NCBI GenBank assembly: GCA_965637545.1
Contig: OZ281497.1
Span: 23,188,001 to 23,252,000 of the forward strand
DNA: 64,000 nucleotides
Direction: 5' to 3'
Origin: Phallusia mammillata
Lineage: Eukaryota
Positions 10,707 to 34,619 of this stretch are shown here, in pieces (position 1 is the first letter of the stretch; each line of letters begins with the position of its first letter). The notes below the pieces were generated by a model. The model ran no database searches and had not been told where the DNA came from. It saw nothing but the letters and a program-made list of their open reading frames with translations. The translations under genes and the position numbers were made by a program.

Positions 10707-12403
10707 ATGACAACCGACGTTCGAGAGTTTTTGAAAGAAGAGTTTCAACTGCGGCGCTTGGGATTTGTTGACTGTGACGCTACTGTTTTTCGACGGCTAA
10801 AGGTTGGTTCGTAGTATTTACTATTTTTCAAAGTATTTGCATATCTTGCTTAAAACAATTCTTTCCACAATGACATGTAAAAACAAAAGTTTGTCTATAA
10901 ATACGAAATAGTCTGACTAACATCGCATATTATAGTTTGTGATGCGGACCGACATTTTGGTCTGCGTTGTTTTTGTGCTATTATTTAGGCATGCTGCCTT
11001 GGTGCGCTTTTGATGCTTCTTTATTAAAGTTTCTGTGTAATGATTACCGCATTTCTTTACAATATAACCCACTTATGAAACACCACAGGGCAAACACTGT
11101 CAAGCATCGATATTGTGCTAAACAGGCGTACTTAGATTTTTACCAATAATTTGTTGTTTTAAACTACCTCAAACAATAATGTTGTTTTTCTACTTGTAGT
11201 GGACTGATCGTCTTTCTATTGTGCTGTTGTATCGTATTTCGGTCGCAGTTTACAGTGTGGGATGGTTCCTAGCCGACATCATTCTTAATCGTGATCCTTT
11301 CTACTACGCTTTCCTTACCCACTGGGGAGAGTTTATTATGTGCCTTTACTTCAGTAAGTCGCTCTCTCTTATGGATAAAATTGTGAATTAAAACACATTT
11401 GTTTTGCTGATTTAAACATATAGTGTGGTCTGCTATATACGCAAATCAAATTTCTGCGTTGTAAAACAAACTTATTTGTTTTTATTATAGTTATAGCAAT
11501 ATTTAACACTGTGCGTCCATCAACTGCGGGATTTTTCAACCCTTTGCCAATCAGATCACCTCCCAATTCTCCACCACTAGGGGGCGTGAGAAATAGGTCA
11601 GAAAACCAACAAAATCCACCAGAAAGTAAGTTATGTGTTTTTGAGAATTTGGAACCATAGTTCTTGAAACGATTTTGAAAACTACAATATTTTGTTGTAA
11701 AACTAACTTGATAAACAAACAAACCATCAAATCGTGTTAATGATAACATATTTGCAATTATGAAGTGCAAAATGGAACCAGTTTGCTGCTAAACTGACTT
11801 TAAACTTTTCGCATTTTATATGCAGACCCTCCCGTTTCGCACGAGCCACTTGACCTCTATTGGACGCACAAGGTCACGTGGGTGCTGTTTAACCTCTACG
11901 GTGACCTTGCGCCTTTCATCAGCATTTTGTATTGGATCGGAGTAACGCATGGCCTTGTGGGAGCCACACCATCAACGTTAGCCATAAATGTTCACGTTCA
12001 CGCTATTAACAGTGTCTTGTTGCTCGCCGAACTTGCCTTGAACGATTTGCCAATCCGCGTGCTGCATTTTTACTTTTCACTTATTTTCGGGCTAGTGTTT
12101 ATTTTTTTCACGCTAATACTGCACTGGGCTGGTGTCATGTCAGCAGTTTACCCTGTGCTGGACTGGTCAAGTGACCCTGGTTCGGCGGTGGGCTTTGCGG
12201 TTGCGGCTCTCGCCAGTTGCTCACTACTCAGCCACGCTGTTGTTTTTGCCCTTTACGCCGCTAAGACTCTACTTTGCCGACGTTACTACTTGGCGCGCGA
12301 GCCGCCGGTGGTCATAACGCAAATAATAGCACCACCACAAGTTGGCGTCAAACAGCAGGAGAAAGCGGAAAAGACCATTCGCATTGAACTGACGTCTCTA
12401 TAG
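10707..12403 (+). CDS. Protein rolling stone-like (FAR-17a/AIG1-related multi-pass membrane protein)
   Basis: Exons 10707-10802, 11200-11353, 11491-11625, 11826-12403 with compatible phases. N-terminus MTTDVREFLKEEFQLRRLGF, motif YAFLTHWG, HAINSVLLLAEL and YPVLDW resemble the rost family. Confidence 0.82.
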
Positions 12404-12851
12404 AAAGTTTGGCTTCTTTTTTAACCCACTGTGAAACCTTCATTCGTATTTGTCAACATTGGATGCATCAGCACATTTATACTGTCTGGAGTTCTTTTTT
12501 ACTTTTGTATCCGCTTTATAAATGAACACCCTTTTTTGTTGTCGATTGCCAATAGTTTTCTTCCTATTTACAATGTAACACATTTGTCAACAGCACAAAT
12601 CTAAAAAATTAACCAATATTATTTTTCTTTTTTTACCACCATTTCACCAACTTTCGGCCTTCTGTTTTTGATACAAATAGGTTTTGGTCGTTTTTCGGGC
12701 TTTACTTTGGCATGATAAACTTAGCGAGGCTTTATTTGTTATGCTGGTAACACTATTTCATAGAACACAAGGTTCCAATGGTATTAGGAAATAATGCTTC
12801 CAAGTGTAATTTTTAAAGAGGTACAAGTTAGAAGTTGCAGAAACGGTTTGT

Positions 12852-14434
12852 TTATAAACGACTCCACTTGGAGGAGAGGACTTTGTAACAAAACACAGCA
12901 CCAGTGTGCGGTGGTTGAATATCTTTGAAGATGACTTCACCGGTGACTGTGTCCTTGTATTCCGAATACAAAACTTCATTGCAAAGTTTAAAACCTACTT
13001 TTTTTGCCAGTTCCTTTGATTTATTTGTATTGGCCACAACTGTGATCATTTCAAAGTTCTTCTCAAGCGCCACATCTTCAAGTCTATGGAACAGAAATGA
13101 TCGTTACTATTAACTTTTAGGTTGAAAAGTGTTGTTTCCATTCTGAAATTAAAGTACCAACGTTCGCATCAACAGCATTGCAAGTCCTCGTCGTTGATAT
13201 TTCGGATTAGCAATTATAATCTCTCCGTTCAGATAAGGCCGTTTATCGACAATTTTAGGTAAATGCTTCAACATGAATTCATCGAACTGAAAAGAGGTTT
13301 CAAGTTTGTAATCTTAAAAATTGACACTCGGTTGTTTTGCATTTTTACATATTTAATTCTGCAATTTTACATTAAATATTACCCTAATATTTCAACGCTT
13401 TTATTATTGTCAATCTTGCAACGTATTTTCAGTGGTAGAGCTACTAACACTGAGCTTGGGCTGGCCCCCGCCCTGAGAACTTCTGGTAGGTGGCGCAAAA
13501 GAGCATAGGCGTTTATGGTGCTGACTCAGCAATTATTCTTACCATAAACGCCTATGCTCTTTTGCGCCACCTACCAGAAGTTCTCAGGGCGGGGGCCAGC
13601 CCAAGCTCAGTGTTAGTAGCTCTACCATTTTCAGTTTACAACGTAAAAATTGGGTTGCAACACGTTGTATATTACTTTTTTATTACGATTTTATTCCAAC
13701 AACTCTTAATTAACAATGCCCACCCTCAACATTTTATCAAGAGAAGGGGTGTTTTCACCCGTGGTAAAAATCTCTGGATGAAAATACTTGTTCCATTTTG
13801 TGACTAAAACACAAGCACACAACGTATTTGATTGAACATCAAAGACTCCAAAAGACACGCTTTGTGGAACAAGAAACTGCAACAAAAATAATTAAACTTT
13901 ATAAATATTCCTTGTTTTACAAACGGCCACGAATATCTGCTTGTTTTCTTTCAACATTACTGATGTTATTGGTTCATCCCATGTATATATCTAATCGCGC
14001 CTGAAAAGTCTAGAAAAATTGCTAACTTGCTCAGATCGAGCTGAACAGGCTGTATGAACATCATACTCAATACTCTTCCCAGCCCCACAAAATCTTTCTA
14101 GCGCAATTTTAAAATACAATTAGTTATAGCAAACGAGTTTTATTTACGCACGGCCGCCAGCAAGTATACTTTATTAAACATATTCACCGCATAAACTCAT
14201 TTCTGCGGCTACAGGTTGTGCATCCCTGCCTTACAGTAAGCTACTCTACTGTTAGTGCTTTTCATTCCCGTTTAACATTACCTTGATACATGTGTCGATG
14301 AAGATATTCTTTTCCGTGTCTGTAAATTGTAAACATTTTGCAGTCACTTCCTCATTCAAATAAAATAACAGCAGTTTGCGGATCTCTGCTGAATCTTCTA
14401 CTGCCAGAAGTCTTGTGCTAAATTGGCCTTCCAT
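12852..14434 (-). CDS. GNAT N-acyltransferase, insect-AANAT-like, copy 1 (intact, ends SKWSRL)
   Basis: Exons 14434-14282, 13876-13724, 13286-13162, 13083-12852 (about 220 aa). Acetyl-CoA motif A NPKYQRRGLAMLLM; C-terminal YSEYKDTVTGEVIFKDIQPPH resembles the insect AANAT tail. Confidence 0.85.
13434..13626. mobile_element. Fold-back Mutator-like MITE (GGTAGAGCTACT family) in intron 2 of GNAT copy 1
   Basis: Perfect 86-bp arms (13434-13519 and 13541-13626), 21-nt loop, perfect 9-bp TSD ATTTTCAGT (13425-13433 and 13627-13635). Confidence 0.88.
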
Positions 14435-15725
14435 TTGTTTCTCATTCAACTAAGTTGACCTTCTGTATCAGCCGCAGCTGTTGAGCTTTAATCTTCAAAA
14501 ATATAAAGAGTTTTAGAAATGGCTGCGAAGTTTTCTTAAAGCATGTTTAAAACTCTTGATTTACAAAATTGCGATGTTGGGCAACTTGACTTTCATAACT
14601 AAGTTTTTGTTTTACAATTGTGACATTTGGCAAATTGACCAAAAACTTAACAGTAGAAAATAGTGGCAGCAAAAAACTGTTAAAACTGTATTCCATATGG
14701 TACGAGTTTGTCTGTTAAACATGATAGATCGTTTGCTTTTCGTTAAGCAAGGATATCATTAATCAGCACACTATTCGGGCAATTTGTATTGATGAAGTTT
14801 CTGATTTCATGTATTTCGTCGTTGCATTTGTTAACTATTTTCAAATACGAATACTGTATAACTCGCTGGCACTCGAAAACTAAGGAACTGTTCATAAATT
14901 CTAATAACACAACGCAGGTATATTTGCAGCCTATTCGAATGACGCAAAACGTATGTGACATTATGTCTACCACATACTTTCTAAAATTTATGGTAAACAA
15001 ATGTTGCCACACGTTAAAAACCACAATTCTTGTACTAGCCCAACTTCTTAGCTACCTGCAACTACATGTCAAGTTCTGCATCGTTCAGCTTGTTTTACAC
15101 CTCGCAGCACAAAAAACCCTTTCCAAGTGGCACACATTTGTTGTGTACGGCCTATATATCAGGCGTGGCTTTTGGAATTTTTGTAAGTTGTTAAAAAAGA
15201 GTGACTATCGGAACTTTGTACTGTCTCCCAACGTTTATGTAGTTGCTAAAAGTAACAATGCTGCTTGGTTTACCAGGTATCGGTAATAATAACATCAAAC
15301 ATTGGTTTTGGTGTCACAATTCTGACAGATTGATCTTCCTTTGTGGTCCCAAGCGCCACTTGATGCTTCATGGACACCGGACATTTTCTACCCGACCCAA
15401 ATCTTATTTGTAAATATCGTAACTTGTTTTCTGTGTTGCTTGTGCTTACTTAGTAAGTCAGCAAACAATCGTCATTTGTACTTTCTTGCTTAAAACTGAG
15501 GATGCCATTAAATCGGCGAAATCGATATCTTAAATTTATTTTTTATTTCTTGCTTAGAACTAAGGATGCCATTACCTCGTCGAAATCGATATTATTTACA
15601 ATACATTGCAAAACGAAAAACACAGATTGATTTAGGTGCATTGAAAGCTTCAGTTTACTAATTGATTTTGTATTGAAGTTACAATAATGTTAATGCAGTT
15701 AAAATGAGCGTTTCAAAATTTCCCT

Positions 15726-18700
15726 TTACAAACGACTGCGCTTTGAGGTGAGTTCTTTGTAGCAAAACGCAGCACCAGTGTGAGGTGGTGGAATGTCTTT
15801 GAAGATTGCTTCACCGGTGACTGCGTCCTTGTATTCCGAATACCGAACTTCATTGCTAAGTTGCCATCCAAGTTTTTTAACCAGTTCTTTTGATTTATTT
15901 GTATTGGCAACCCCGATAATAAATTCAAACTTCTTCTCCAACGCTATGTCTTCGAGACTGTTAAAACATAAAGCATAATTTTCATTGCTAATTGGACAAT
16001 TTTATAAACTAGAGATGTACCGAATCGGCTAATTTTCGAATATTTGTGTTTCGTCAACATTTTAGTTCTGTAGGGTTTAACTTGGCCTTAGGCATGATTG
16101 TCAGCCACCAATAAATTACTGATTTGTTGTCTGTGCGAAAAACAATGTATTGAAAATGTTAATACTTGACGCAATTGGAGTTTTGACGTAGTTTAAAAGA
16201 TTGTACGGTGCCGCATCTAAGGCTGAAAAGACACGTTTTACGCTTTAAATTTGTTTTTATTCGGCCGAAAATTGACAAAGATTCGGTACATCTCTTGTAT
16301 AAACAGCTCGTTTGGAGATCGTATTAAAAGGTAATCTACTCACAGTTGCATTAGATGCATCGCAAGACCACGACGTTGGATTTTCGGATTCGCGACAACA
16401 ATCTCCCCGTGTAGATAAGGCCGTTCATTAATAATTTTCGGTGCGTCTTTAAGCATATATTCATCAAACTGAAAACAGTACATTGTGCAAGTGACATTTA
16501 TGACAGTGCCGGATTGCATATTTCCAAAATGTAATCTATTTCGCATATGGGGCTTTTTTAACCAATCAGAGGGACAGATTTTTGCGGACTTTCGTTACGT
16601 CACGTAGGCCGTTGCGTAGTGGTTTACTTTGCGCATTTTCGATGTTGTAAGGTCGTCACTGCTTTTTCAAGTCAAAATAATATTTTATTTTGAAAATATG
16701 GCGAAAATGGAAGCATTCAGTACAAAAGTGCAGGTAATGACCAGTATATAATGTATTGCAATAAACTAGACTGATTATATTTTTCTCTTTGTAAAATTAC
16801 TGATATTATGCACAGCAGCACACATGCAGGCTACTTTCAGAGAAATATATGCAATTTTGTTTTAGATACCATCGCATCGTGAAAACAACAGCGCGGATAA
16901 AGCAAGCAGCAAGATAGAAGTGTTCATGTTTACTAAAATGCAATGCTTTAAGTTGTATGTAATGGCAACAATGAGGGCTGGTCTTTTATATTTAAAGCTA
17001 CTTTTAAATGACATAAATATCTGAAATCAACATACTGCTTAAACTTCCAAAATGTTTACAGTAATCAGCAGTATAATCTTACACTGCAAAAAAAATTAGC
17101 TAGCTATGAAGTCAAAAAATAAAATGGCTGAATTCAAGCCAAAAACGGTTTGGAATCGCCCATTTTAAAAATCTTTTTAAACATGGCTTATATCAATCCA
17201 GTATCGGCTTGTAATGAGCCATGTTTCTACTTTCACACTGAAAGTTTGTTGGCTGAAAATTAAAAATGGTTTCGGCTCATTTCCAGTCAAAAAATGAGTC
17301 AGTACAGTTAAAGGTTGGTCCTTATGACTCAATAGTGAGCCATTATTTTTTGCAGTGTACTATCAATCTGTAATGAGTTGACATCTTTTGTTGTTAACAA
17401 CCTTTGGATTATACAAATACCCAGTTCAAATACTGTGTTATTTTCTTGTAACGAAGTGTTTGTGGGCGCTATTTTTTCCATTTAGTTTTTTTAATAGCAT
17501 ATAGGCCCACGTCAGTTGATTTGTTGAACTCTCCAATCTGTCCTAAAATTGTTTTTGGCAAGTACAGAACAATAATTGCCTCTGCACCTCCTTCCAAAAA
17601 GCACACATTTAAGTTATGGTGGGGCAAAACACATGTATCAAATCCTGAGGTTCTGTAAAAGATGTTTAAAATGTGTAAACGAAAGCTTTCGTGGTCAATA
17701 GTTGGAAATAACAAAATGAAATACCATCATTCTATTTTAGATTTTGGTATAGATTGTATAAACATGTTGGAAAACTCACATTAATATCCTTGTCAAAAAC
17801 TAGTGTTGTTTATATGGGTATCAAAAGTACTGGTTGCCTTGACCTTGTTGTCATTAAAAAAAATTAGGCCTGAAAAAACTTTTTGTTCACTACCAATTTA
17901 CCCAGTACACCAAAGTTTTCATTTTCTACAGTGTATCCATTAAAGTGTCCTGTATAAGCCTCCTGAATTGCACTGCCTTCATGAGTCTTGTGGTCGTATA
18001 TGTGTAATTAATAAACTGGAAAACGGCAAGCATAATGATGACTTTAAAAAAGGCAGGCATAGTGTTTAACCATAAGCCAGCAGTCAATTTTAATTGTTGT
18101 CTTTTCTTTCCACAAATATCCAAAACCATTTCATTTTTATTAAACAAACATTAATCACATTTTATCACCAATATGAAAACAATACTTTTTATAATCTTTT
18201 GAGACAATACATACAGATTAAAACATTTTTGGAATGCACTGTGTCAATCTGAAATAACTTTTTTTAGACGCCAATTATACTTTACACATAAATTTTGAAA
18301 TGCTTGTGTCAGGGCAGCCAGACTTTTTCTGTGGTCTATCCTTTCCGAAGTTTGATAGTTTTGGCAATGTAGAGGTTCTTTTTTTTTCAGATTTGATACA
18401 TAAATATATACAATCTCTTGTGAAGATTGTTCTATTATGTTATGATATGTTCATGATCAAATTAATAATGACACAAACGTCGAAAATGCTGAGGCTTAAG
18501 CATACTTCCATGCGGCAACAATAAATGTCCTACAATGATACAGCACTCAATCCTGAAATAGTGTGCTTTGGATAAGAGTGGTTGTTGGCAACTGCACTTC
18601 TTCATCTGTTACAAGCAACTTGGTCCTATTTGATTGCATTTGTTAAGTTGCCTCGGTGTTAAGTTTGACTTAAACATTTATAGATACAAGGCATAGAGTG

Positions 18701-20355
18701 TTGAATTTAATTGCACTGGTTTTATGTTGGAATTTTTTAGTACTAAAAAATGTTTGATACACATTCATTGGAAATTAAATCGGTATAAATTAGGGCCCAA
18801 ATTTTGGGTAATTTCATTGACATAGCAACCCCAATTTGGCTTGATACACGGTCAAAATTTGGACCAACCCCCAGTCGTCAGATTGGTTGACCAAACCAAT
18901 TTTTTGACAAAAATTCAAGGTCAAATTTGGATAATTTTTTGCTGGTACAAAGACAACTTGGAATTCCAGCTTGTTTTAGAGATTTCACATGTGTTTCACA
19001 TCTGCAGAAAGACTGTCCACTATATCCAAGCCAATTTGACTATTCTTCTGCTGAAGTTTTTTTCCTCCAAAAAACATTTCGGTTCTTTCTTTTGTTACTA
19101 CCAAACAAGTGCTTCTACGAAATGTTGTGCTTCTATTTTTTGAGTTTTAGCTGCAACTAGGTCTATGGTTTTGCCTACACAACAACTCAAGTTCAGTTTT
19201 TTTAAATTTAATTACCATTACTATAATAAAACTACATGCATAGTACGCTTATACTGGTATTACTATAAACAATGCTATTACCATTAAAACTACATACATA
19301 TGCTTAAACTGGCATAACTCTAAGCAATGCTAATGAAAACAAGCTACACCTGCGAAACGGAACTTAAAATTTAAAATAAGTTGATTGCATGGTTGTCACG
19401 CATCGTGTCCTGTGATTGGTCAAAAGCAAAGTGTTCTCTGATTGGTTTGGACTGCCGAAGCGGCGGTGAAAACGATACCTGTGATTGGTTAAAAAAGCCC
19501 CATATGCGAAATAGATTACATTTTGGAAATATGCTGCCGGATTATAGTCCATGTAATGATGGTTGCTAAATAAGGGTTGCGTTAAAACCCCTGGGGGTCC
19601 GCCAAGCGTTTTCAGGGGGTCCGCGACAACTTTTTAACTCCCGCAAAACGAGATTAATAATCGCAATTTGAAAAAAAAAAACGCTTTGGCGTTTAAAAAA
19701 TAGCATGAAACTTGTTTGAAAACTTTCTACGTAGGCGACAAACCACAATGCATTATGACATCTAAATCCCATTGTGATGCAACAAACGTAAATTGTCAGC
19801 GGAAAACAACGTCACATTACACTGCAATGGCTCTTTCTTGTTGCAATTAAAATTTTTGTCCTGGACTGAATGTGGTTGTAACTTTATGCACCATGTTTTG
19901 GTTGCTTAAAGCAAAAAGGTTGAGAACCACTGGTTTAAAGTAAAAATTTTATTATGTAAAAAGGAAAAAAAAACGCAATCTTACCCTTAGTAACTTGTTC
20001 AGTGCAGGTGTATGTTGACCGAGGTTAAAATTTTCTGGCAGTACATGTTTGTTCCAAGCTGTATTCAAATGACAAGCAAGCATCTCATCCGATTTCTCAT
20101 CAAACACACCAATACAAGTGCCTTGAGGGACAACAAACTGTAAGAAAAGTTGCTGCATGAAGATCTTTAAACGAGAACAAACTTTAGTTATTGCACAACG
20201 ACCTTCAAATACGTATCTACAAAGAGGTCCTTCTCGAAAGCTGACAATTGCAAGCATTTTGCAGTTACTTCTTCATTTATATATAACATCAGAAGTTGGC
20301 GAATCCCAACAGAATCCTCTACCGTCAAACGTCTTGTTCGAAAATGACTGGCCAT
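15726..20355 (-). CDS. GNAT N-acyltransferase, insect-AANAT-like, copy 2 (intact, ends SKRSRL)
   Basis: Exons 20355-20203, 20137-19985, 16468-16344, 15957-15726; motif NPKIQRRGLAMHLM; intron 2 enlarged to 3.5 kb by transposons. Confidence 0.83.
16010..16296. mobile_element. hAT-type MITE in intron 3 of GNAT copy 2
   Basis: TIR (T/A)AGAGATGTACCGAAT; 8-bp flanks TTATAAAC and GTATAAAC (7/8). A right-end fragment of the same family lies at about 7008-7039. Confidence 0.75.
16516..19534. mobile_element. 3.0-kb non-autonomous Mutator-like element in intron 2 of GNAT copy 2
   Basis: Perfect 53-bp TIRs starting GCATATTTCCAAAATGTAATC; perfect 9-bp TSD TGCCGGATT (16507-16515 and 19535-19543); no recognisable transposase ORF. 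Confidence 0.85.
17082..17357. mobile_element. CACTA/EnSpm-like MITE nested in the Mutator-like element
   Basis: Termini CACTGCAAAAAA and TTTTTTGCAGTG, flanked by TA on both sides. Confidence 0.65.
19590..19932. mobile_element. Partial hAT-Charlie-type MITE
   Basis: Right TIR GGTTGAGAACCACTG followed by GTTTAAAG; GGGTCCGC subterminal motifs; left end not found. Confidence 0.6.
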
Positions 20356-23300
20356 TTTTCACCACAACTAATCCAGCTGCTGTGCGATACAACCTAACTT
20401 GTGCGAAACTAGATTGTTTGTTGCCTGAATTCTGTTGAATTAAGTTGTAAAGTTTGACTAAATAGACATGAATCTTCTGCTCAAGACATGTAATGCCATT
20501 AACGCTAATCTTCCAAAGCTACAAAACAGCAGAAGAAATGTTGCTACTGTGACCTACTTAAACTGCTGTGCACTATGTACTGTCCTATGGTGTTTACCTT
20601 CTTCTATCGTTTGTGTTTGATCACAAACCGACCACGAGTGATTTGGAACGTTGACCAGTTGTATGCGGCTTTCGTGCACGAAACATGACTCGCGTGAAAC
20701 GATGTAATGTCAAGGATATTGCTTGGCTGTTTCATCCGAGAAGATAAAATTGTTTGGCATTTTTGGCGTTCTGTTTCACTGATCAAAAAACATCACCATA
20801 CATTCAGTTACGAGTCGTTCTGCTGGGTCATGTTAATGTTTGTCGCTACGAGCTTTGTGATGTAGCATCTAAGTTGGGCAAAGTTTGCTGCACGAACATC
20901 GACTGTGTTTTAAATCAGTTGTTCTTAAACAATTCAAATTCCTTTGCTGATTTAAAATAATTTTGAAATTGTAACATTTTGGTAACAAATATATTCGAAA
21001 TGAGGGTCTAGGCCAGTGGTTCTCAAACAGAGCCCATGTTGTCTTGATCTTCCTTAAGCTTCAATGTATAAGCCTGTCAATCAAACTTCATAGCCTCTCA
21101 ACAACGATTCGGTTCGGGCCGGGTTTTGGACTTGTACTTTTGGGTTCGGGCGGGGTTATGACTCCACTTTCGAGCCCGTTTACAACTCTGGTCCTTATAT
21201 TCCGAATACAGGACTTCATGGCAACGTTGATATGCGAGGTTTTTACTAAGACCTTTTGATTTCTAATTAGCTGACTTAGCTGCGGGCTTACAGCAATGAA
21301 TCATGCAATCCTGTGCGCTAAACACCCCCTTTTGCGTTTTAAACACGCGTGTGCTACGATATGGACATGTTGCCTTTAGCTTATTTCATTCAGTGCCACA
21401 GGACGCGATCGCCTAATTAAGATGTTTTAAATCAGTTGCCCGAAGGTTTGCAAACACAAACCTTAAACAACGTTATTGTTTTCCAACGTAGGAGTGTTGA
21501 CAAACAGTTGTCGAATACTTACTTCATCAGTATTGCTTTGGTATTACATTTAAAGTTGATCACAGTAGGTTCGCTATTCTGGAAGCTGGTGTATATATGT
21601 GTGTAAACACATGATAAATTAAAAGGAACGTTGGTTGCAACCATATTCAAAGTCTGATACCCAAACATTGTGTTGACAAACGGCTTTGTAAGCATATCAT
21701 TAAAACACACACATGACAAAACAGAGATTACCTTGGCATTCGCAATTGATTCTTAAATTAGTTAAATAAACTTAGCATATCTTGTAGTCTCTTTTGCACC
21801 AATCATTTGACATTAAAAATACTGCTGATCATTTCACACTGTCGCTGCACAAGCCTATCGTAGAAATACATCAATTTCTTTTATTTCGAATAAGCGGTTT
21901 TGTGGTGGGGCAGCTTGTTTAGACACCTCTCCTTTAAGTGAATGTTAGAAAATTTATCGAAATCTGATTCTAAATGGTTTATTTGAAGGTACGGCACAAC
22001 TTGCGTTCTTCGTAACGAAGTACGTGGTTCGGTCATTGTAATTTGTATTACGGTTGCTAATTGGACACATATGTTAATCAGGTAAATGGGAAGTTTTGTG
22101 GTTTTGAAAGTGGCTTATTGTAACTTTAAGTGCATTGCAAGGTCTTGACATTAACACAAATTTGCATTAATAATTTCTACGAGTAGATCCGTGATAAAAG
22201 TTTCAGTTTCAAACCGGCCCGCAGTGCAAAAATGTGGCCGACCCCTGTTGCACGTGATAAAAAACTTGTTTGTGTTTTATAGTTGTTTGTTTTACTTTTA
22301 TTTAAATCACTTGGTGGAGTGGAACTTTAGTTCTCGTTTATTGACAGGTTTTATCTTCATAATATAATGTTACTTTAACTAGAAGTCATAATTCTTCCAC
22401 AAAAAGCCATAAAGTAAACTCACGCAATAGTAGAATAACAACGTCATACTTTAAATTAGGTGACGTCATATGATAGCATAAATAGTTACTCAGATTAAAA
22501 AGACTAACTAGCAACGTTACATCAAGTGTGGGGTCAAGTTTATTCAGTACCTGCTGGTGTGGCAATGTATTTTATATTTTTGTGTGTTTTTCATTTTAGC
22601 GGCATATCACACACGTCAAGGCAATTACACCTTTTTTTAAAGTCTAGAGGTCTTGGATGTTGCGTTTTCTAAAATCACACACCCTAACACTTACCCAATC
22701 GCAAAACCGTTCTTTATAGCCGCCTTCGTTGTACAGTAATTAATTCCTTTGTTTCGGAGCGACACTACTTTTGCCCCGAGTTACAAATGCCCTTTGTTAT
22801 GTGACTATATATTTGCGTTTGCTAGTCCAAAAAAATACACTGCAAACTAGACTACTTGGCCAACAGCGATAAAAGTTTACCGTAAGGCCTAGGCAAAGAA
22901 ATCTTGTAGGTCTTTCGTTTGACAGTACAGCATCCGACTTGTTTCAGCTTAGAAACTTAAGTAAATGATTTTTTCTACAAAGAATATTCCTTTCATTGCA
23001 TTAAATAGAAACTTATACAAAGACAAGTTTCATCTTGTACAATCTGTTGGTGTTGCATAATCCAACACAGTCTGGTTGTAATACAGACTTGGGCTGGTTT
23101 CCATTTTCTTTGAAAAGTGATCAAGTTTTCATATACACGCTGAAAGTTTTGTCAATAAATGCAGGATGTCCGGTTGTCCCATGATGGTTTGGTTCTCTCG
23201 GATTGATACACAACGCTTGGTCTTCAGGCTGATAAACAGACTTTTGCGAGGCATTTCGAAATGGCGGATTTTTCTTGTAACTTTTGTAACTTCGTATTAT

Positions 23301-23850
23301 CTTTTAAAAGTGCAAAAACGTATGTCTCAAGCCGAGGAGAGGTATATTACAGCCTCGTCTTAGTTGCATCGAAGCAGATGATTATGTTTAGAGTTGTGAT
23401 TAGTCGCATTGATACTAAAACCTAGACTAAAACTTTGCTAAGCCTAATGTTTATGTCTCTAGTTTCTATAATCGTGTTGTCAATATTTAGGATTGTTATC
23501 AAGCTCCTATCATTGTGCCACGTGGGCTATATCGTAGCTCATTACATTAAAATTAGATGGTGTTGTGTAAAAGGTTGTATGCATTTGAAGGTATTGCCCT
23601 ACTGAAATTATAACTTACCTCCAAGCTCGAATTAATTAGCACTCACAAATCGAAAGGCATAATAGTGAATTCACCTTTGACTAAGCATAAATTGAAAGAC
23701 ATACTCTTTGTTAACGTAAAATTATATGTTAGTTTGTGCCGTCAGTTTAGAACTTAAATAGACATTGTAGTCTTAATGGGCGATAACTTCAAACGTTACA
23801 GTTCTGTTACAGCAAAAAAATTTTGAGCCAAAAAAAAGCGTGTAAAATAA

Positions 23851-25367
23851 ATGGAGGGGCGATTTTTTATGAGACTTTTGACACCAAAGAACAAGAATAT
23901 AATTCGCAAACTTTTCAAGTTTTATTTTGAAGAGGAAGTAACTTTGAAATCTTTGCAACTATCGGAAGTTGAAAAGGACGTTATCATTAAAACTTACATG
24001 AAGGTGGGATTTCCTAATTTTAAGTATTTTAAAAAACAAACCTGTGTAACAAAAACGTTGATGTTAATATAAGTTAACGACGATTTTTCAGTCGGTCGTT
24101 CCTCAAAACTTGTCCGTTGGTGTGTCTGATGTCAAATCGGATGAGATATGTGGATGCGCGTTTGGTTCCATTGGGGATAGTAATCCTGACATGCACAGTT
24201 ATGACACCGATAAGCTCACTCCTTCCCTTGCTAAGCTACTAAGGGTAAGCGAAACGACGCTATAAGCACATTTTAAATATATCTCTTATTTGCAAAATAT
24301 TTATAATGCGTTACCTATAATTAACTCTTATTTGCAAATGCGGCACATTTTAAATATATCTCTTATTTGCAAAATATTTATAATGCGTTACCTATGAACA
24401 AGTCCGTTACCTATATTTTATTCAACTTTGTACTGAATTGTATTGCATTAATTTTGAAACCGGGCATGAAAATGGTTTAAACAGTACAGAAACATTACAC
24501 TAGTGCCACAGAATCGGGAAACGGCAGCAAAAACCTCACGGTTGAAAATGCGCCAAAGCAAAAATTTTTACATAAAAAGGACATAATATTATAAGACGGC
24601 CGCACCCTTAACACTACAGCCGCACCCTTAATACTACGTTTGAAACAGTAAGGTACGAAATTGAAAAATAAGTCAATATGAAAACCAAACACACAGAAAT
24701 TGATTCGTTTTAGTTGTTGCTATTATAATATTTTACCACACATAAAAGCTCAGCTATAAAACATAGCTGCTAGGTTCATGAAATCTATGACACGTAGGTA
24801 TTTACCAAGCCTATGTATTAAATTTTAACCTTCTGCCGAAATATAAACCTTACTATGTTTCAGTTTGAAGAATACATGTTAAAAGACTTGCCACGAATTG
24901 TCAACCAACGACCGTATCTGCACATTGATGATGTGCTTGTGAAAACGAAATATCAACGTCAAGGTCTTGCAATGCACTTGGTGCAAAAGTGAGATTTGTA
25001 TAATCTTTGTTTTTTTGCTGGCACTTCTCAAAAGCATTTGGGTTACAACAATTTTAATGTCATTGCAATATGCAAACCGCATATAGCTGTAAGACCACTA
25101 TAAACTAAAATGACACGATGTTTTTTGTCGTTCAGGCTAGAAGAGATAGCGTTGGAAAATAAGTGCGAATTATTAACATGCGTGGCCAATACATATAAGT
25201 CAAACGGAGTTGCGAAAAAACATGGGTTTCAAATCCACAATGAAGTTCTCTACTCCAAATACAAGGACACAGTAAGCGGAGAAGTCATCTTTAAGGATAT
25301 TCCAGCACCCTATACTGGTGCTGCGTTCGGCTCCAAAGTCCTTTCTCCCCAGGAGAGCTGTTTGTGA
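23851..25367 (+). CDS. GNAT N-acyltransferase, insect-AANAT-like, copy 3 (intact, the only + strand copy, ends QESCL)
   Basis: Exons 23851-24003, 24092-24244, 24864-24988, 25136-25367; motif KTKYQRQGLAMHLV. Confidence 0.83.
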
Positions 25368-26121
25368 TTGGATTTTCTTTAACTGCTAAAACCTTATCTT
25401 AACGGATTGTTGTAATTTTGTGTGGTAATAATTTGGGGTAAACTTGTTTGAAATTTTTTGGACTTGGTTGCATTGCGGCTTTCGCCAACGGACTGCAATA
25501 AGACTGAACCCAGAGAGAACATTGCGATTGTTTGACATAAAATACAAGTAACGCGTTGAAAGAAACTGCGTGCTATATGATTTTGACATTTATAAGTAAG
25601 TGTAGCGACTGCTTAGTGGCTAATATACTGCTATTGGTCAACAGCGAAAAGAGTTACCTGTAAGGCATCAGCATGATATAATTTGTAGGTTCAGCAAAAG
25701 GCCGGAAATGCACAAATTGTTTTTGCAGTTTTTCGCAGAGAAACATTTAGGACTGTGAGTCGACCAATTTTAGAATTTGGCATGGTAAGGAGAATATGAA
25801 ATAAAAAAATTATATAACTTATTACAAACTGGTTAAAGATGTGCTTTCCTAGCACTCAAAACGTAAAATTAAATGAAGCGTTTGTTATAACACAGTAAAA
25901 GGATACACAAAATTATCTCATTGTGCTGATAACCCTCCTTGTCAACATTTTAAAACCGCCCCGTCTTTCGACGTAATTTCATCAGAAGAAGTTGAGGATA
26001 CAAGTTGAAATTATTTCCCAGAATACGAACTTTTAATGAAAAACAATGTCTCTAAAAATTGAACATGAAACTAAGCAATACTTAGATAGTATGATTTAGT
26101 CTATTAAATTCGTGTAACTGT

Positions 26122-26370
26122 TTGAGTTGTAAACGGGCCTGAAATTAGAAAAAAAAACTTGTAAATTAGAGCCCAACCCGACCGGAACTCGAAAGTACAA
26201 GCCCGAACCCAGGCCCGAACCCAGGCCCGAACCCCAATCGTTTTCGGGAAATCCGTTTATGCCCGAAAGATTGATTGCCAGGCCTAGACATTAAAAGCCT
26301 CCGGAAGGACAAAGACAACCAACACAATAGACAATCGGTCTTGAACAAGGCGGGCTATCTCCCCAAGCCT
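26122..26370. mobile_element. Fragment of the AGAGTTGTAA-terminus MITE family, lying where copy 4 exon 4 would be expected
   Basis: GAGTTGTAAACGGGCC terminus, CCCGAACC repeats and AGACAATCGGTCTTGAAC, shared with 45820-46256, 27958-28180 and 21110-21190. Confidence 0.65.
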
Positions 26371-26515
26371 GAACGATAAAAAAGGTTTGCGTTCGTATGG
26401 TTGAGGGTTGTGTCAAAAGCTAAGCAGATTGCGTACAGCAATAACACTGAATTGTTGTAACCGGAAAGCTTTTTGGAAATGCCAGTGAAAGTCTAGCAAA
26501 GATTACAAATCCAAC

Positions 26516-27239
26516 CTTTCCACCAAGTGCATTGCAAGACCTTGACGTTGATATTTTGGATGCACAAGCATATCATCTATATGCAGATACGGTCGTTGGT
26601 TGACAATCCGTGGCAAGTCTTTTAACATGAATTCCTCAAACTGAAACATAGTAAGATTTTTATCAGTTTGAAATGTAAAATAACATGCGTATCTCATTTC
26701 ATCTCATGATTCTAAAAACTATCAGTATCACATATGTATTAAACGTAGCAGTTATAATATGTAACATTTCAGGTATTTTGAGATGTAAATTACTATGAAC
26801 TATATTTTCAAGAGGCACGGCGTTGTTACATTTCGATATTCTTACCCTTAGTAACTTAGCAAGCGAAGGGGCGTGTACATCGATTTCATAACTGTCCATA
26901 TAGAGATAACTGTCCCAACGGGTAGCAAACGTACAAGCACACATCTCATTCGATTTGACATCAAACGCACCAATGGAAAAGTTTTGAGGGACGACCAACT
27001 AAAATAACGACGTTAAAATGTTACATTAACACCAACAATTTCGTCACATAGACTTTATTGAAGAACCTTTATCTTAGAGATCCCACCTTCATGTAAGCAT
27101 TAATAATAACGTCTTTCTCAAGAGGCGATAGTTGCAAACATTTCATAGTTACTTCCTCTTCCCAATAAAACTCAAAAAGTGTTCGAATGACATTCTCGTC
27201 TTTTGGTGTCAAAAGTCTTGTGCAAAATAGGCCCTCCAT
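26516..27239 (-). pseudogene. GNAT copy 4: exons 1-3 open and spliceable, terminal exon 4 not found nearby
   Basis: Exons 27239-27087, 26998-26846, 26640-26516, closely similar to copy 3. I found no exon-4 homologue on the - strand between 25368 and 26515; unspliced read-through stops within a few codons (TAA at 26503). Confidence 0.65.
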
Positions 27240-27436
27240 GTAGATGGTTAACACGTATTTGTTTGGCTTGCGATTTTTTCGCTGTAGCGCAACAGAATGT
27301 ACTATTCCGCTTACTTGTCTTTGTATAACCTAACCTTCGTACGAATACAGTTTTGGCTTTTAACTGGCGGTTTGCAAAATCTGATAGTAGGTTTTACAGC
27401 TTTGATCAAGCCTTGATTGAGTCCCACTTCAAAGCT

Positions 27437-28777
27437 ATGATAGGAATATCGTTTTGTGTATGCTCACGTTGTACCAGACGAAACGCAGAGATTTGCAAAA
27501 AAGAGACTGTAAAGCAACTAAGTCTGTTTAAACATGCATTTCCTAACAAAGTTTCATTTCCCAATATTTAGATCAATATGTATGACAAATTGGATGTTTT
27601 GCTGTCAAAGGAGTCTGCGAAAACAATTTGTACATACCTGGCCTGCTTCACATACAGAGTTTATTCTGCTTAGGCCTTTCAGTTAACTTTTCTCGTCGTT
27701 GACCAATCACAGCATGTGTACATCAAAGACATGTGTGCATTAGGTACTCATTAACTTGATCCCACACTCGGTATGAATGATAATAATCAATAGCATAGTG
27801 TTGTGACGAGCGAATAGGCTGCATTTGTTGTAGTTGTGTTAGTACATATTTATGTATCTTAGTTTTTTAGGTTACAGACCATATCACATGTTTGTGTAAC
27901 CGCGAGTTAATGTTGTAAAAATCAGTTTGGACGTTAGGCTGAAAGCCAAAACAAACCAGAGTTGTAAGTCGGGGCTGGTTTTTCGGGCCAGGTTGGGGTT
28001 CGGGCTGAGGTTTCTTCAAAAAAACTCTCTTGATTCGGGCCTGACTACACTTTGTGTCAGTATTTTTTTTTTGAATAAATTTAACTAGCTAGGTAGCCAG
28101 TTGTTGGACCTGACCTAATATCAAACAGCGCCTTGTTCAAGACCGATTGTCTAGTTTGATATTAGGTCAGGTCCCGCAAATGATTATCATTCATACCGAG
28201 TGTAAGAATAATTGACGAAGCAACAGCGCTTCCTAACCAGAATCAGTCAACAAATGTTATTTAACGATATATATTTCACCCGTAAGGGCATCATCAGTCG
28301 TCTTATGAATAAGATTCTGGTTAGGAAGCGCTGTTGCTTCGTCAATTATTCTTACAGATAATTCACTATTTAATCAGTGATCGTCGACAGAAGATGCCTA
28401 CTATTTTCGGGAAAGATCCTGTAATAAACACTAAATGTCATACCGAGTGTGGGATCAAGTTAATGAGTACCTAATGCACACATGTCTTTGATGTACACAT
28501 GCTGTGATTGGTCAACGACGAGAAAAGTTAACTGAAAGGCCTAAGCAGAATAAACTCTGTATGTGAAGCAGGCCAGGTATGTACAAATTGTTTTCGCAGA
28601 CTCCTTTGACAGCAAAACATCCAATTTGTCATACATATTGATCTAAATATTGGGAAATGAAACTTTGTTAGGAAATGCATGTTTAAACAGACTTAGTTGC
28701 TTTACAGTCTCTTTTTTGCAAATCTCTGCGTTTCGTCTGTTACAACGTGAGCATACACAAAACGATATTCCTATCAT
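27437..28777. repeat. 340-bp near-perfect inverted repeat pair
   Basis: 27437-27776 is the reverse complement of 28438-28777 with one mismatch seen. Confidence 0.9.
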
Positions 28778-29520
28778 TAACTAGTGTAACGGTTGCAACA
28801 TTATTGTGCAATGTTTATGATATCTATAGCATGTTATTACGCAATAACGTATCACACCACGAAAAGGAAGTGTTTACCCTCATTTCTGCAGAGACTAATG
28901 TTTATATTTCCGTTTCTATGGTAGTCATAGGTTATTTTCAGCCATTTTTCGGGTTCCAGAAAGATCTAACAGTAAACATAGTATTTATTCCCTTTTGACA
29001 CATATTTCCGTCGGCATTTTCAGTGTTTCCGCAGTAGTGTTTCGTGTAGAACGCGTTGTTTCTACCCTGTGTAAAAGCATATGGTGTTCACTAAATGGCG
29101 CTATGGCACTATAATTTACATGGCTACCTGAAAATAAATAATATAAGTAATATGAGAAAAAGAATTCGTACACCGACCTATGTTTCGCACTGTTATATAA
29201 GCGTGGACTTTGATGTGTTCAGCAGGCTATTGGTGGCTTCTATTTCCACCGGGAAAGCTTCTATTGGTGGCTTCTATTTCCACCGGGAAAGCTTCTATTT
29301 TTGGTTTCTATTTTTATCCCATGTGGATGTGTAGCTGATTTGGACGTTCGCCTTTAACGTTATTCAAGAATACAAAGAAAGAAGAGACATATGTGTGGCT
29401 GTTAATCAGTCAGCTGTTATTGAGATGCAAAGATCAGACTCACCAAACAATTTCCAATGAACATCATAGTTTACATTGTAGCCGCCTTTAACAAGTCGTC
29501 ATCGAGGCAGGCGTGCTACA

Positions 29521-29631
29521 CTAGCTAGGTAGCCAATTGCGGGACCTGACCTAATATCAAACTAGACAATCGGTCTTGAACAAGGCGCTGTTTGATATTA
29601 GGTCAGGTCCCGCAATTGGCTACCTAGCTAG
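29521..29631. repeat. Perfect 42-bp hairpin with a 27-nt loop
   Basis: Arms 29521-29562 and 29590-29631; 29537-29687 is also an inverted copy of 28030-28179. Confidence 0.88.
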
Positions 29632-29827
29632 TTAAATTTATTCAAAAAAAAATACTGACACAAAGTGTAAAGTCAGGCCCGAATCAATCACTTTATACTA
29701 TCACAAACAGGTATATATTACAAATTGCAGTTTTATATTCCATTTTCTTCAGGTAAACTTTAATAAAAGTGACAAACTTATTCAAATTATTACAATCATT
29801 AAAAAATGATATTTGTTTTACTGGCCC

Positions 29828-31644
29828 TTAAAACGTACATAAATAAAACGGCTGGGCACTTGCAGAAGGATGCACAAAGCGATTAAATAAAAACAATAAG
29901 TGATAAATTACTAATTTAAGGTTTGCATTTAAGCAAATTTTGTACAAATGTATTGGATGAAGAACTTTGTAGCAAAACACTGAACCAGTATGTGGATATG
30001 GAATATCTTTGAAAACTGCTTCACCGGTGACAGCATCTCTGTACACTGAGTAGAAAACCTCATCACTAAGTTGGTAGGCCAATTTTTTCACCATCTCCTT
30101 TACCTTATAAGTATTGGCCACAATAGTTACCATATCGCACATTTTGTTAAGCGCTATTTCCTCGCATCTAAACCATATTGGTAACAGTGTACAGTGCTGT
30201 AAAGAGGAGGAAAATATTACAACAGTTTGTTTGTATTACTGACAGCAATGTTCGGCAATTTTTAACTTAAAACCTTTGACAAAACTAACTAGTTAATTAT
30301 TCCCCGCTACAATGAGTTCAATGCAACGAACTAGATTGCCGCAGTATAGCCTACGGCCAATGTCCTGTCACCAGCTACAATAACATGACCTTCTAGGCCA
30401 GTGGTTCTCAAACTTTTTCATATTTCTTTCAAAACGATCCCTTTGCCATTATTTCGAGGGCTCGCGGTCCTTAAGGCTGAATGTGTATGTCAGAAAAACA
30501 GAAGTTGATTGCAGGATTTTAGCTAGTTATGCAAAATTGGACATTACTAACAAGACGAAAACATTACGATTGTGCGAGAACAATTGCCTTTTGTTAGTTG
30601 TCATGCAATAAAGGCAAATGTTTAGCAATGGAGACAGTTTGTTCTCAATTATACTTTGATTTGAACTGATTCAGTGGCACAAACCGACGCCAAATAAGAT
30701 TATAGAGGTACTTCAACTTTTTCGCGGTCCCCCCAAAATTGCCTGACGGACCCCTAAAGGACCGCGAACCCCAGTTTGAAAACCGCTGGTCTAGGCCAAA
30801 ACGTTGTCGGCAGCTATTTTAATAGGTTACGTTTGGAATTTACATTATATAACGGTTTTGCTGGAAAGGTAGTAAAGAAGATTAAACAGCAAAAAACTGT
30901 AAAATTTAAAATAGAGACTGAAAATTTTGAAATCACCTTCGCATTATGTACATTGCAAGCCCTTGACGTTGAAAATTTGGGCTGACAACCACAGCATCTA
31001 TGTGTAGATATCTTCGTTTGTTTACAAGTCGTGGCATGTCTTTTAACACCACTTCGTCGAACTGAGGTAATTGACACACGTCTACATTTTAGGTCTCAAA
31101 TATCTGTGCAAACTTTCTACGGACTCTTAAAAACTCTTTTTATGTTTTGTTTTTAAAAGTTTATGTTTTTCTAAAAACTAAATACCTTTATGGATTCAAT
31201 TTTAAAATAAAGATTTACAAAAGAGACAAATAAACAGATAAAACTCACTCTAAGGTTTAATTATCGTAAAGCTACATCTCACCCGTAATATCTTAGTAAG
31301 GGAAGGAGTATTTTCATTAATTTTATAATTCTCCTCGTGTGGATAACCATCCTGTCGTGTAGACAAAGTACAAGCGCATAATTCATCTGATTTCACATCA
31401 AACACCCCAAAAGACACACCTTGAGGAACAACAAACTGAAAATATAGAACGGCTAATTACTACCCAGAAAATAAAATAGAAAGCATCTGACCTTCATATA
31501 AGTTTCCATGATAACGTCCTTCTCAGCCGGCGAAAGTTGTAAACATTTTGAAGTCACTTCTTCCTCCCAATAAACCTCACCAATTTTGAGAATTATTTCT
31601 TTATCTTTTGATGTCAAGAATCTCACATAAAATCAACTGTCCAT
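29828..31644 (-). pseudogene. GNAT copy 5: probable pseudogene
   Basis: Exons 31644-31492, 31435-31283, 31061-30937, 30167-29828. Codon 4 is TGA (31635-31633; Arg in copies 3 and 6), and the C-terminus runs on about 36 codons beyond the paralogues' stop. Confidence 0.75.
30399..30788. mobile_element. hAT-Charlie-type MITE in intron 3 of GNAT copy 5
   Basis: TIRs CAGTGGTTCTCAAAC and GTTTGAAAACCGCTG; TSD TTCTAGGC/GTCTAGGC (7/8). Confidence 0.85.
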
Positions 31645-32617
31645 GTTATAAAAATTTTTTTGCTTCTTTTTAAGGTGTTTGATCTGTTAGTTTTTTAAAT
31701 TCGATCGTGGGTTTTACTGCTTCAAAATCTAAAATAAACAGGATTTAATATCATTGACGATGTTAGTTATTTGAAAAAACGTTTCAGCCCAAACTTTGCA
31801 CCAATCACACCTTGACACGACTTTCTTTTCTGGCCTTTCTGTCCATCGCTAACGTTCAATATCTTTTTATCGTGCTTGTTTAGCGACGTGCTGCAACCAC
31901 GGCTACTTATTAACTGGACTCTGCAAGAGATGCTATACAAGCTCAGTGGCAATATCAATAACATACTAAAGACCCTCACAATGCGTCTGAAAACAATTGC
32001 AGTGCGCTATTTGAACAACCACTTTTAGACGGCTACATACTACTTTATATGATTGTTGCTAGTGGACAACATAATGCAATTAAGATTAATGTTGAAATGG
32101 AGAACTTGGTTTAAATTTTAATTCGGGTAACACACATTTATCACAAAAATTATTTCACGAAAACATGATTGATTCATCACAAAGTTTTCTTTTTGTTGTT
32201 ATGCTATGTTGCAAGTTTTTCTATAATTCGTTTCAGCAGATCAACGCAAAGTGTATTTTAGCAGGTCGACGCACTGTGGGTCAACGCAATAAGTTCTCTA
32301 CTCGCGTGGTTCAAACTTCCACAAGCTTTGTCCTGCAACCTTGATTACACAAACCATTACTAAGGTCAGCCAAACATCTTTAACGTCGGTGTTGGCCTAC
32401 TAGTCCAAACTTTGGCAATTTTGTTTACTCTTTTATTCACCGAATGATTGCATACAGCAGTAGCAGAAAATAGCAAATTCCACTTTGCGCTTTTGCGAAA
32501 TGCCGAAACTAATCAAAGCAATTAATTTAGGCGATATGTCGGGTAAGAATCAGTTTGCAAGTTAAAAAATACATTCCGATTAACAGACAACTCCGCTGTG
32601 AAGTAAACACTCTAAAC

Positions 32618-32907
32618 CAGTGGTTCTCAACCGCCGGTCCGCGTCAACTTTTCTGCCGGTCCGCCAAATAAATTACAAATTTATGTCTTAATTTATTTTT
32701 TTATACCTGAAAGAACCGCTGCGTTTAACACGTATGATATCAAACAGACAGCAGCAAACTTGTCATTAAATTGAATTTTTCATACGTCTTTTGAATTACA
32801 TCTTTTTGTCGTAATTGCATTTTGGGTTGTTTTTTAAAGTCCACCGGTCCGCAAAATTTGTTTAGAAAGTTTACCGGTCCGCAAACTTAAAAGGTTGAGA
32901 ACCACTG
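32618..32907. mobile_element. hAT-Charlie-type MITE about 25 bp past the stop codon of GNAT copy 6
   Basis: TIR CAGTGGTTCTCAACC; perfect 8-bp TSD CTCTAAAC; CCGGTCCGC subterminal repeats. Confidence 0.9.
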
Positions 32908-32931
32908 CTCTAAACCAAACCACTGGATTTT

Positions 32932-34619
32932 TTAACCGCCTCGCTTAGAAGACATGACTTTGTAGCAAAACACAGCACCAGTGTCGGGTGGTGGAATGTT
33001 CTGAAAGATTGCTTCACCGGTGGCTGGGTCCTTATATTCCGAATACAGAACGTAATTATGAAGATGAAATCCCATTTTCTTCATCAGTTGCACGGATTTA
33101 TTGGTATTAGCAACTCCAATAACCATTTCAAATTTCTTCTCCAACGCTATATCCTCGAAACTGGTGAAATAAACACATCGAATAATTTTGCCGTTTATCA
33201 CACTGGGTTACATGCCAGAAGTCAATCTGATGGGGATATTCGACTTTTTGATCATTTAAAGAGAAATTATAAACGAATTTGCCTTGTTGTTGTATCGATT
33301 TTTGCACCTGCTAAATATCCGTTTTATTCCCAAATATTTGAAAACATTCCCAATGGGATATTGCGTACGCATGGGTAGATTTAAACGCCACAACACTAAC
33401 CTTTGCATTAGATGAACTCCTAGACCTTGACGTTGGAATTTTGGATTTACTATTATGACCTCCAAGTGCAAATAAGTTCGGTTATTCACAATTCGTGGCA
33501 TGTCTTCTAACATGAATTCATCGAACTGAAAAGTGCTTGCGATAATATTCACGATATTTTCAATGTTAAAAGGCAATATGATTTTAATGAACAATAAAGC
33601 TTGGATCACATTTAATTATCAAAATAAAATCATCGAATCAACTTATAATAAGTCGTTAACGGTCAGTTGTGGCATAAAACAGGTTGACGAGGCACGACTT
33701 TTCAGCTTACTGCTCCCAACAAACTGAAGTGCTGCATTAGCTCATACGACGGATCTTTCGTCACCAGCTGCACTGATGAGACCTTGTAGGTCGAAACAGT
33801 GTGCACTGTCTGCAGCTTAATTAAGCTTGGCTTCTAAGTTAATTGCTAATTTTAACTAGAGCGTTCTTACAAAAATGAAAGCAAACATATAACAGGATAG
33901 AAATATAATTTCAGTGTTGCTTACCTCAATTGTTTTATTGAGAGAAGGGGTGTGTTTGCCAGTTTCATAACTCCCTGGGTGGAGGAATTTGTTCCACTCT
34001 GTGGCAAAAACGCAACCACACATCTCATTGGATTTGAGATCAAAGACTCCTACCGATACGCCTTGCGGGACAACGAACTGTGGTAAAAATCACTGTCAAA
34101 AACGAAATCGCAATACACCGTATGTTTTACAATGGCGTACAATTTCAAAGGGGGCCTAAAAAAGATCAGTATACCAGTTAAATTGACTTTACAGTCGAAA
34201 GTGGGTTTCGCGTATTATGATTTCTGTGTGATTGTTTAGTTCTTGCTGGTCGGTAATAAACACAAAAAGGCTGATCCAAGTAGTGCATAAATGTTCACAT
34301 TGTCATAGTTATATTATTTCTCAATCCAAATTCCATTGCAGTATACCTGTCAAATTTACTAGGCTACGAAAATGATATAACTAAGGGTAAAAAGTTGTTA
34401 AAGATCAAGCTGATATTAAATCTTCAGCTTATGCAGTTGACCAACAAATGTTGTGCAATACATTACCTCCACGTATGTGTCCATAAAGGAGTCCTTCTCA
34501 GTGACCGATAGTTGCAAGCACTTTGAGGTAACTTCTTCATCAAAATAAAGCAAGAGCAGTGTACGAATCTCTGCTGCGTCTTCTACTGTCAACCGTCTTG
34601 TGCTGAAACGGCTGTCCAT
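32932..34619 (-). CDS. GNAT N-acyltransferase, insect-AANAT-like, copy 6 (intact, ends SKRGG)
   Basis: Exons 34619-34467, 34077-33925, 33525-33401, 33160-32932; motif NPKFQRQGLGVHLM. Confidence 0.85.

Follow-up and report, generated by a model that had tools for sequence, protein, structure and literature searches.

A tandem array of probable insect-type arylalkylamine N-acyltransferase family genes in the ascidian Phallusia mammillata

Background

The insect-type arylalkylamine N-acyltransferases (iAANATs), a subfamily of the GNAT enzymes, are the closest described relatives of the genes reported here. Insect members carry a DEPLN motif whose Glu acts as general base (Glu-47 of Dm-AANATA), a conserved Arg (Arg-153 of Dm-AANATA) that pairs with the Asp of DEPLN, and a C-terminal His (His-220 of Dm-AANATA) described as "relatively well conserved" (PMC6070697). 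The family is not confined to protostomes, two insect-type aaNAT genes having been listed for Ciona intestinalis and four for Saccoglossus kowalevskii, and tunicates were reported to lack both the vertebrate and the non-vertebrate AANAT lineage (Hiragaki et al. 2015, PMC4394704). Here we describe six paralogous genes at positions 12852-34619 of a 64,000-nucleotide stretch of Phallusia mammillata DNA (contig OZ281497.1, positions 23,188,001 to 23,252,000), referred to below as the window. The window is eukaryotic DNA of about 37% G+C, and its source is an ascidian, a kind of host that an initial annotation, made from the sequence alone, had envisaged as possible. We read the six genes as a tandem birth-and-death array of the iAANAT family, a reading to which we assign a probability of roughly 0.8.

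Gene structure and copy status

Copy 3 lies on the plus strand and the other five copies on the minus strand. In all six, exons 1 and 2 measure 153 nt each and exon 3 measures 125 nt, the introns fall in phases 0/0/2, and all exon boundaries show canonical AG acceptors and GT donors. Reading frames and splice sites thus bear out the exon plan of the initial annotation for all six paralogues, with the qualification that the deposited model of copy 3 has an exon 2 of 171 nt. The copies, and a relic of a seventh, are as follows.

12852-14434, minus strand: copy 1, intact (exon 1 14282-14434, exon 2 13724-13876, exon 3 13162-13286, exon 4 12852-13083 including the stop codon)
15726-20355, minus strand: copy 2, intact (exon 1 20203-20355, exon 2 19985-20137, exon 3 16344-16468, exon 4 15726-15957)
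21143-21262, minus strand: exon-4 relic of a seventh, partial copy, truncated beside a short repeat (tblastn E 6.6e-6)
23851-25367, plus strand: copy 3, intact (exon 1 23851-24003, exon 2 24092-24244, from 24074 in the deposited model, exon 3 24864-24988, exon 4 25136-25367)
26516-27239, minus strand: copy 4, exons 1 to 3 only (exon 1 27087-27239, exon 2 26846-26998, exon 3 26516-26640)
29828-31644, minus strand: copy 5, probable pseudogene (exon 1 31492-31644, exon 2 31283-31435, exon 3 30937-31061, exon 4 starting at 30167)
32932-34619, minus strand: copy 6, intact (exon 1 34467-34619, exon 2 33925-34077, exon 3 33401-33525, exon 4 32932-33160)

Amino-acid identity among the copies is 50-71%, and the copies fall into three groups: 1, 2 and 6; 3 and 4; and 5 by itself. 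The identities for copies 1, 4 and 5 are exon-by-exon sums, and analyses at full length drew on the public proteins for copies 2, 3 and 6. Searches of copy against copy with tblastn gave E values of 1e-15 to 1e-32, which together with these identities places the similarity between copies beyond chance. Most pairs have more than one synonymous substitution per site (dS > 1, saturated), and the ratio of nonsynonymous to synonymous rates (dN/dS) is 0.18-0.45. These values argue that the copies are old duplicates under purifying selection; the youngest pair is formed by copies 3 and 4, with a dS of 0.35.

Two of the copies are damaged. Exon 4 of copy 4 was not found in the 1.15 kb that separate it from copy 3 (25365-26517) by tblastn and blastn with intron 3 plus exon 4 of the five other copies; the start of copy 4 intron 3 aligns to intron 3 of copy 3 (70% over 163 nt). 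Copy 5 keeps its ATG, and the DNA alignment of exon 1 shows TGA at codon 4 (31633-31635). Its usual stop codon is also gone, so that the frame continues for 45 codons, to 29828, and copy 5 is probably a pseudogene. The relic preserves part of a last exon, of which 21191-21262 has 78% nucleotide identity to exon 4 of copy 2. With four intact genes, two damaged ones and one exon relic, this is a birth-and-death tandem array.

Repeats are found within the array at several points. Intron 2 of copy 2, at 3.5 kb, contains repeat or transposon sequence and was probably enlarged to its present size by a transposon with inverted ends. Similar open reading frames (ORFs) lie at 16340-16546 (minus strand) and 19381-19569 (plus strand). 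Transcript contigs cover part of the intron, 16516-18011, and join 16731 to 16864 at plus-strand GT..AG sites; the loose ends of these contigs do not map within the window, except for one that maps in inverted orientation at 19458-19477. Between copies 4 and 5 there is an inverted repeat (27353-27686 and 28528-28777), both arms of which encode an identical 50-residue ORF; this suggests a recent transposon or a palindromic duplication. Outside the array, 4458-5006 is a tandem repeat, open over 182 codons, whose period is rich in proline and lysine (K-P-A-R-T-x-K-Y-K-P-Q-N-Q...) and which has no match in Pfam. Short pieces of it also adjoin the exon-4 relic at 21.1 kb and sit near 26.2 kb, in the region of copy 4's missing last exon.

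Transcription and splicing

Copies 1, 2, 3 and 6 are intact, transcribed genes. Copy 2 is represented by a deposited P. mammillata protein (CAB3263283.1, "uncharacterized protein LOC108950041", here P0002), which is spliced exactly as predicted and differs from the window at 3 residues. A follow-up protein search recovered P. mammillata proteins for copy 6 (P0082), again spliced as predicted, and for copy 3 (P0083). All three public proteins derive from mRNA. The copy 3 protein uses an exon 2 acceptor at 24074, 18 nt upstream of 24092, which adds six residues, LTTIFQ; both acceptors are in frame. One further residue of exon 2 differs between this protein (Phe) and the window (Ser).

Contigs from four studies were placed on 12700-18699. 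The runs carry no RNA label on record, and it is the splicing of their contigs that shows them to be RNA. Contigs of runs X1 and X5, from two studies, lack each of the three copy 1 introns (13084-13161, 13287-13723 and 13877-14281), with joints at the predicted bases. Intron 3 of copy 2 is removed (joint 15957/16344) in contigs of four runs and studies, and for its exon 3-exon 2 junction the loose end of a contig maps to 19986.

Sequence kinship and fold

The full-length copy 2 protein matches Pfam Acetyltransf_1 at 22.3 bits (cut-off 20.7). Taken exon by exon, the only Pfam match is a sub-threshold GNAT match on exon 3; exon 1 alone has no match in the PDB, and exon 4 alone matches Aedes aaNAT2 in register (E 0.014).

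Profiles gave much clearer matches. An exon-4 profile (A1), built from the window copies and three paralogues and searched against 1.84 billion representative proteins, identified the copy 2 protein P0002 and a blowfly (Lucilia) "arylalkylamine N-acetyltransferase-like 2", the latter at E 2.4e-6, and it matches almost every solved insect AANAT in register. The best match of the search against representative proteins, a 2229-residue stick-insect protein with 34 short matches, was discarded as a low-complexity repeat artefact. A second profile (A3) was built from tunicate sequences only, nine proteins of Phallusia, Styela and Ciona, to avoid circularity. It matches Aedes aaNAT2 (4fd5, 2.1e-25), Tribolium AANAT (6v3t, 3e-20) and Drosophila Dat (3te4, 1.7e-19) over their full length, as it does every solved insect AANAT (E 2e-25 to 1e-19). 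Other full-length matches are to chlorella virus A654L (1.4e-13) and to polyamine and agmatine N-acetyltransferases (NATs; 7e-12 to 2e-11). The best GNAT from outside the family scores 1.7e-4, leaving a gap of 10^5 or larger between the insect AANATs and other GNATs, and vertebrate AANAT gives no match to this profile at E <= 0.01. A word-index search with an intronless paralogue (L011) yielded no match, and the same kind of search with the tunicate profile returned tunicate proteins only, a result that is uninformative on the range of the family.

The predicted fold gives the same answer. An AlphaFold2 model of the copy 2 protein has a predicted local distance difference test score (pLDDT) of 93.2. 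In a Foldseek search of the PDB, the top 23 chains are all of the insect AANAT family or the Ebony C-terminal domain, with template modelling (TM) scores of 0.76-0.82; generic GNATs reach 0.58 at most, and vertebrate AANAT (1cjw/1l0c) appears at ranks 33-37 with TM 0.52-0.56. This agreement in fold takes in the extra N-terminal helices and the C-terminal strand of the insect enzymes. An independent check through the ESM Atlas, which uses a structure model and language-model features of its own, returned clusters of arthropod aralkylamine N-acetyltransferases (TM 0.85-0.87) as well as nematode GNAT-family clusters. The two profiles, Foldseek and the ESM Atlas therefore agree on the insect-AANAT kinship first suggested by the initial annotation, and the profile and TM values sustain its separation of these proteins from vertebrate AANAT.

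Conserved residues and proposed reaction

The second Glu of an (N/D/E)-E-E-V-T motif aligns with the Glu of DEPLN in all six copies (E29 in copy 2), in keeping with the proposal that EEVT is the equivalent of the insect FxxDEPL motif. The position of the DEPLN Asp is occupied by N, D or E. Motif A, Q-R-R/Q-G-L-A/G, is likewise present in 6/6 copies, in the forms NPK(Y/I)QRRGLA, KTKYQRQGLA, HPKYQRQGLA, SPNFQRQGLA and NPKFQRQGLG. The C-terminal tail of the array proteins reads Y-S-E-Y-K-D-x-x-T-G-E-x-I-F-x-x-I-P-P-P-H, and its P-P-H His is kept in copies 1, 2 and 5. Motif A and this tail had both been noted at the outset, and both are present, apart from copy 4, which lacks exon 4, and from the His itself in copies 3 and 6. 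As judged from these alignments, the core machinery for acyl-coenzyme A (acyl-CoA) binding and amine deprotonation is present and second-shell residues have drifted.

The intact copies encode soluble enzymes of about 220 residues, which by analogy with the insect enzymes would bind their substrates in order, first acyl-CoA, through the Q-R-R/Q-G-L-A of motif A, and then a primary amine. The Glu of (N/D/E)-E-E-V-T would serve as general base and deprotonate the amine through water. The amine would then attack the thioester, giving an N-acyl amide and releasing CoA. This chemistry is carried over from the insect enzymes, and the role put forward in the initial annotation, N-acyl-arylalkylamide synthesis or amine detoxification, is likewise conjectural. 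Arylalkylamines are our leading guess for the substrates because, with the tunicate profile, arylalkylamine-type enzymes score best.

Several observations weigh against this reading. Identity to the insect enzymes is only 16-21%. Outside its Glu, DEPLN differs in the array, which has Val for Pro and Thr for Leu. The first residue of motif A is Gln in all six copies and Arg in the aligned insect enzymes, and in place of the C-terminal His copy 3 has Tyr and copy 6 has Asp. The alignment behind the fold prediction included a few insect sequences. Solved relatives include polyamine and agmatine N-acetyltransferases, so that the substrate class is not readable from family membership, and our literature searches found no biochemical characterization or enzyme assay of any tunicate member.

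These relatives provide the alternative that survives best, namely that the array enzymes acetylate polyamines, diamines or agmatine and not arylalkylamines. Full-length matches connect the tunicate proteins with the solved Drosophila agmatine NAT (5k9n, 7ciu), with Aedes aaNAT5b/spermine NAT (4fd4, 5yag) and with the polyamine acetyltransferase A654L of chlorella virus (3qb8, E 1.4e-13). Arylalkylamine types nevertheless score far better (aaNAT2 2e-25, Dat 1e-19) than polyamine and agmatine types (7e-12 to 2e-11), a difference of similarity, not of orthology, and so a weak discriminator. On balance we regard an aliphatic-amine specificity as somewhat unlikely.

The family in the P. mammillata genome

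A search of the P. mammillata genome with the tunicate profile produced 99 exon-level matches, which we assign to about 74 loci; most of these stand in tandem clusters, and they occupy at least 7 chromosomes. The top match lies near C4:8.89 Mb, and at least 35 of the family's ORFs are intact and intronless. The array is thus a single sub-cluster among these loci. In a tree of sequences whose sampling carries a bias from how they were recovered, copies 2, 6 and 3 form one clade (Shimodaira-Hasegawa-like approximate likelihood ratio test, SH-aLRT, 98); its sister is a cluster at C6:7.57 Mb with introns at the same positions, and all tunicate rows stand apart from the three insect rows that served as outgroup. 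We also weighed, and dismissed, horizontal transfer from insects: the genes contain introns, the family occupies many chromosomes and occurs in three tunicate genera, and tunicate rows cluster apart from insect rows.

The lineage-specific expansion put forward in the initial annotation stands. The locus is not a singular one, the array being one of many clusters, and the occurrence of such genes outside arthropods, which headed that annotation, had already been published for Ciona and Saccoglossus (PMC4394704). The array thus adds members to an enzyme family that was known, and known to occur in this lineage, and its genes are already in public databases as uncharacterized proteins.

Peroxisomal-type tails

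Some members of the family end in tripeptides of the peroxisomal-targeting type. Copies 1 and 2 end in -SRL in the window; the sister paralogue P0003 and a Styela member end in -SKL, and the C6:7.57 Mb protein likewise ends in -SKL/-SRL. Among the 35 intact intronless ORFs, 8 end in -SKL or -SRL, and these are spread over several clades. Two tandem clusters of intact intronless paralogues stand out in this respect. At C6:9533693-9554782 (L024-L026), 5/7 ORFs end in -SKL and the other two in -TKL and -TRL; at C6:8636270-8638923 (L015), both ORFs (2/2) end in -SKL. From their tails, these two clusters would be the best candidates for peroxisomal members.

The distribution of tails suggests that part of the family may be imported into peroxisomes. 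A second alternative goes further: some family members, copies 1 and 2 perhaps among them, would act in peroxisomes and join amines to the acyl-CoAs present there (medium- or long-chain, or xenobiotic), a GNAT-based counterpart of the vertebrate peroxisomal acyl-CoA:amino-acid N-acyltransferases. Besides the tails themselves, the use of long-chain acyl-CoAs by some insect members (PMC6070697) is consistent with such a role. Copies 3 and 6, however, have no such tail, and the tails of copies 1 (12855-12857) and 2 (15729-15737) vary between alleles. Run X1 has 12856 A>G, which gives copy 1 the ending -SRS, and 15734 G>A with 15732 A>G, which gives copy 2 the ending -SCL; the deposited copy 2 protein also ends in -SCL, and three other runs keep -SRL in copy 2. 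Being polymorphic, the signal on these two genes cannot be strongly constrained, and we consider the peroxisomal proposal doubtful.

Remaining alternatives

It might also be supposed that the array is in decay and at present without function. The truncation of copy 4, the early stop in copy 5, the relic at 21.2 kb and the repeats invading the array would all fit such a history. Four copies, however, have intact frames and splice sites and are transcribed and correctly spliced, and dN/dS is 0.18-0.3 despite saturated dS, which makes general decay very improbable. That the proteins are N-terminal or lysine acetyltransferases of the NAA20 type, or generic GNATs not specifically linked to the insect family, is scarcely credible: NAA20 appeared among the weak single-sequence matches (E 0.018), but profile and fold searches largely reject this assignment, the tunicate-only profile placing NAA20 at 2.5e-4 against 1e-19 to 1e-25, full length, for insect AANATs, and Foldseek giving TM of about 0.5 for Naa enzymes against about 0.8.

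Neighboring genes

On one side of the array, 11882-12403 is the last exon of a gene for a membrane protein of the rolling-stone (Rost) family. On the other side are a single-exon EamA-like transporter of 313 residues (44253-45194) and an exon of a PHO4-type phosphate transporter (59684-60070). None of these three flanking genes has an evident pathway link to the array.

Significance

The array adds four intact genes to the picture and overturns nothing known; its novelty is moderate. Its wider interest lies in the family. The P. mammillata total of about 70 loci would be far above the iAANAT repertoires of insects, and neither the size of the ascidian expansion nor peroxisomal-type tails turned up in our literature searches. 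With its roughly 74 loci and tandem birth-and-death clusters, the family is a chordate counterpart to the insect iAANAT radiation and a ready enzyme set in which to seek new N-acyl amide chemistry. If tunicates produce N-acetylserotonin or melatonin, or if they acetylate monoamines to inactivate them, the insect-type family is the obvious candidate.

A broader and quite speculative proposal, which we think unlikely, is that ascidians expanded insect-type amine N-acyltransferases to about 70 genes and sent several clades to peroxisomes, forming an undescribed GNAT-based system, peroxisomal and cytosolic, that conjugates acyl-CoA with biogenic, dietary or xenobiotic amines. If it exists, such a system would supply a filter-feeding animal with N-acyl amide lipids for signalling or with a means of detoxifying amines. 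The array would then represent a single module in evolution, whose targeting signal is still segregating in allelic form. A peroxisomal role or a novel substrate, if true, would raise the importance of the family.

Comparison with known systems

Vertebrate AANAT (serotonin N-acetyltransferase, 1CJW/1L0C) resembles the array proteins in its GNAT fold and overall reaction, but belongs to a different GNAT lineage. Closer are Drosophila agmatine NAT (5K9N/7CIU), Aedes aaNAT5b/spermine NAT (4FD4/5YAG) and PBCV-1 A654L (3QB8), which have the subfamily fold in common with the array (TM 0.74-0.81). They score lower than the arylalkylamine types, and their own substrates are aliphatic polyamines or agmatine.

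The nearest solved enzymes are Aedes aegypti aaNAT2 (4FD5/4FD6) and Drosophila AANAT1/Dat (3TE4). These are like the array proteins in length (about 215-222 residues), are collinear with them over the full length and superimpose with TM of about 0.8. The position of the catalytic Glu, motif A and the C-terminal Y-x-x-Y-x-D-x-x-G-E-x-x-F...P-P-H tail are held in common. The array differs from them in that identity is only 18-19%, (N/D/E)EEVT stands in place of DEPLN, motif A has Gln and not Arg, and the His is lost in copies 3 and 6. Its genes, moreover, have three introns and are found in a chordate, and some tunicate members of the family carry -SKL or -SRL tails.

The iaaNAT genes of Ciona and Saccoglossus (PMC4394704) belong to the same family. 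Ciona is in the same animal group as Phallusia, and the Phallusia records are named after Ciona LOC genes. Whereas that survey listed 2 genes in Ciona, P. mammillata has about 74 loci arranged in tandem clusters, with intron-bearing and intronless subfamilies and peroxisomal-type tails.

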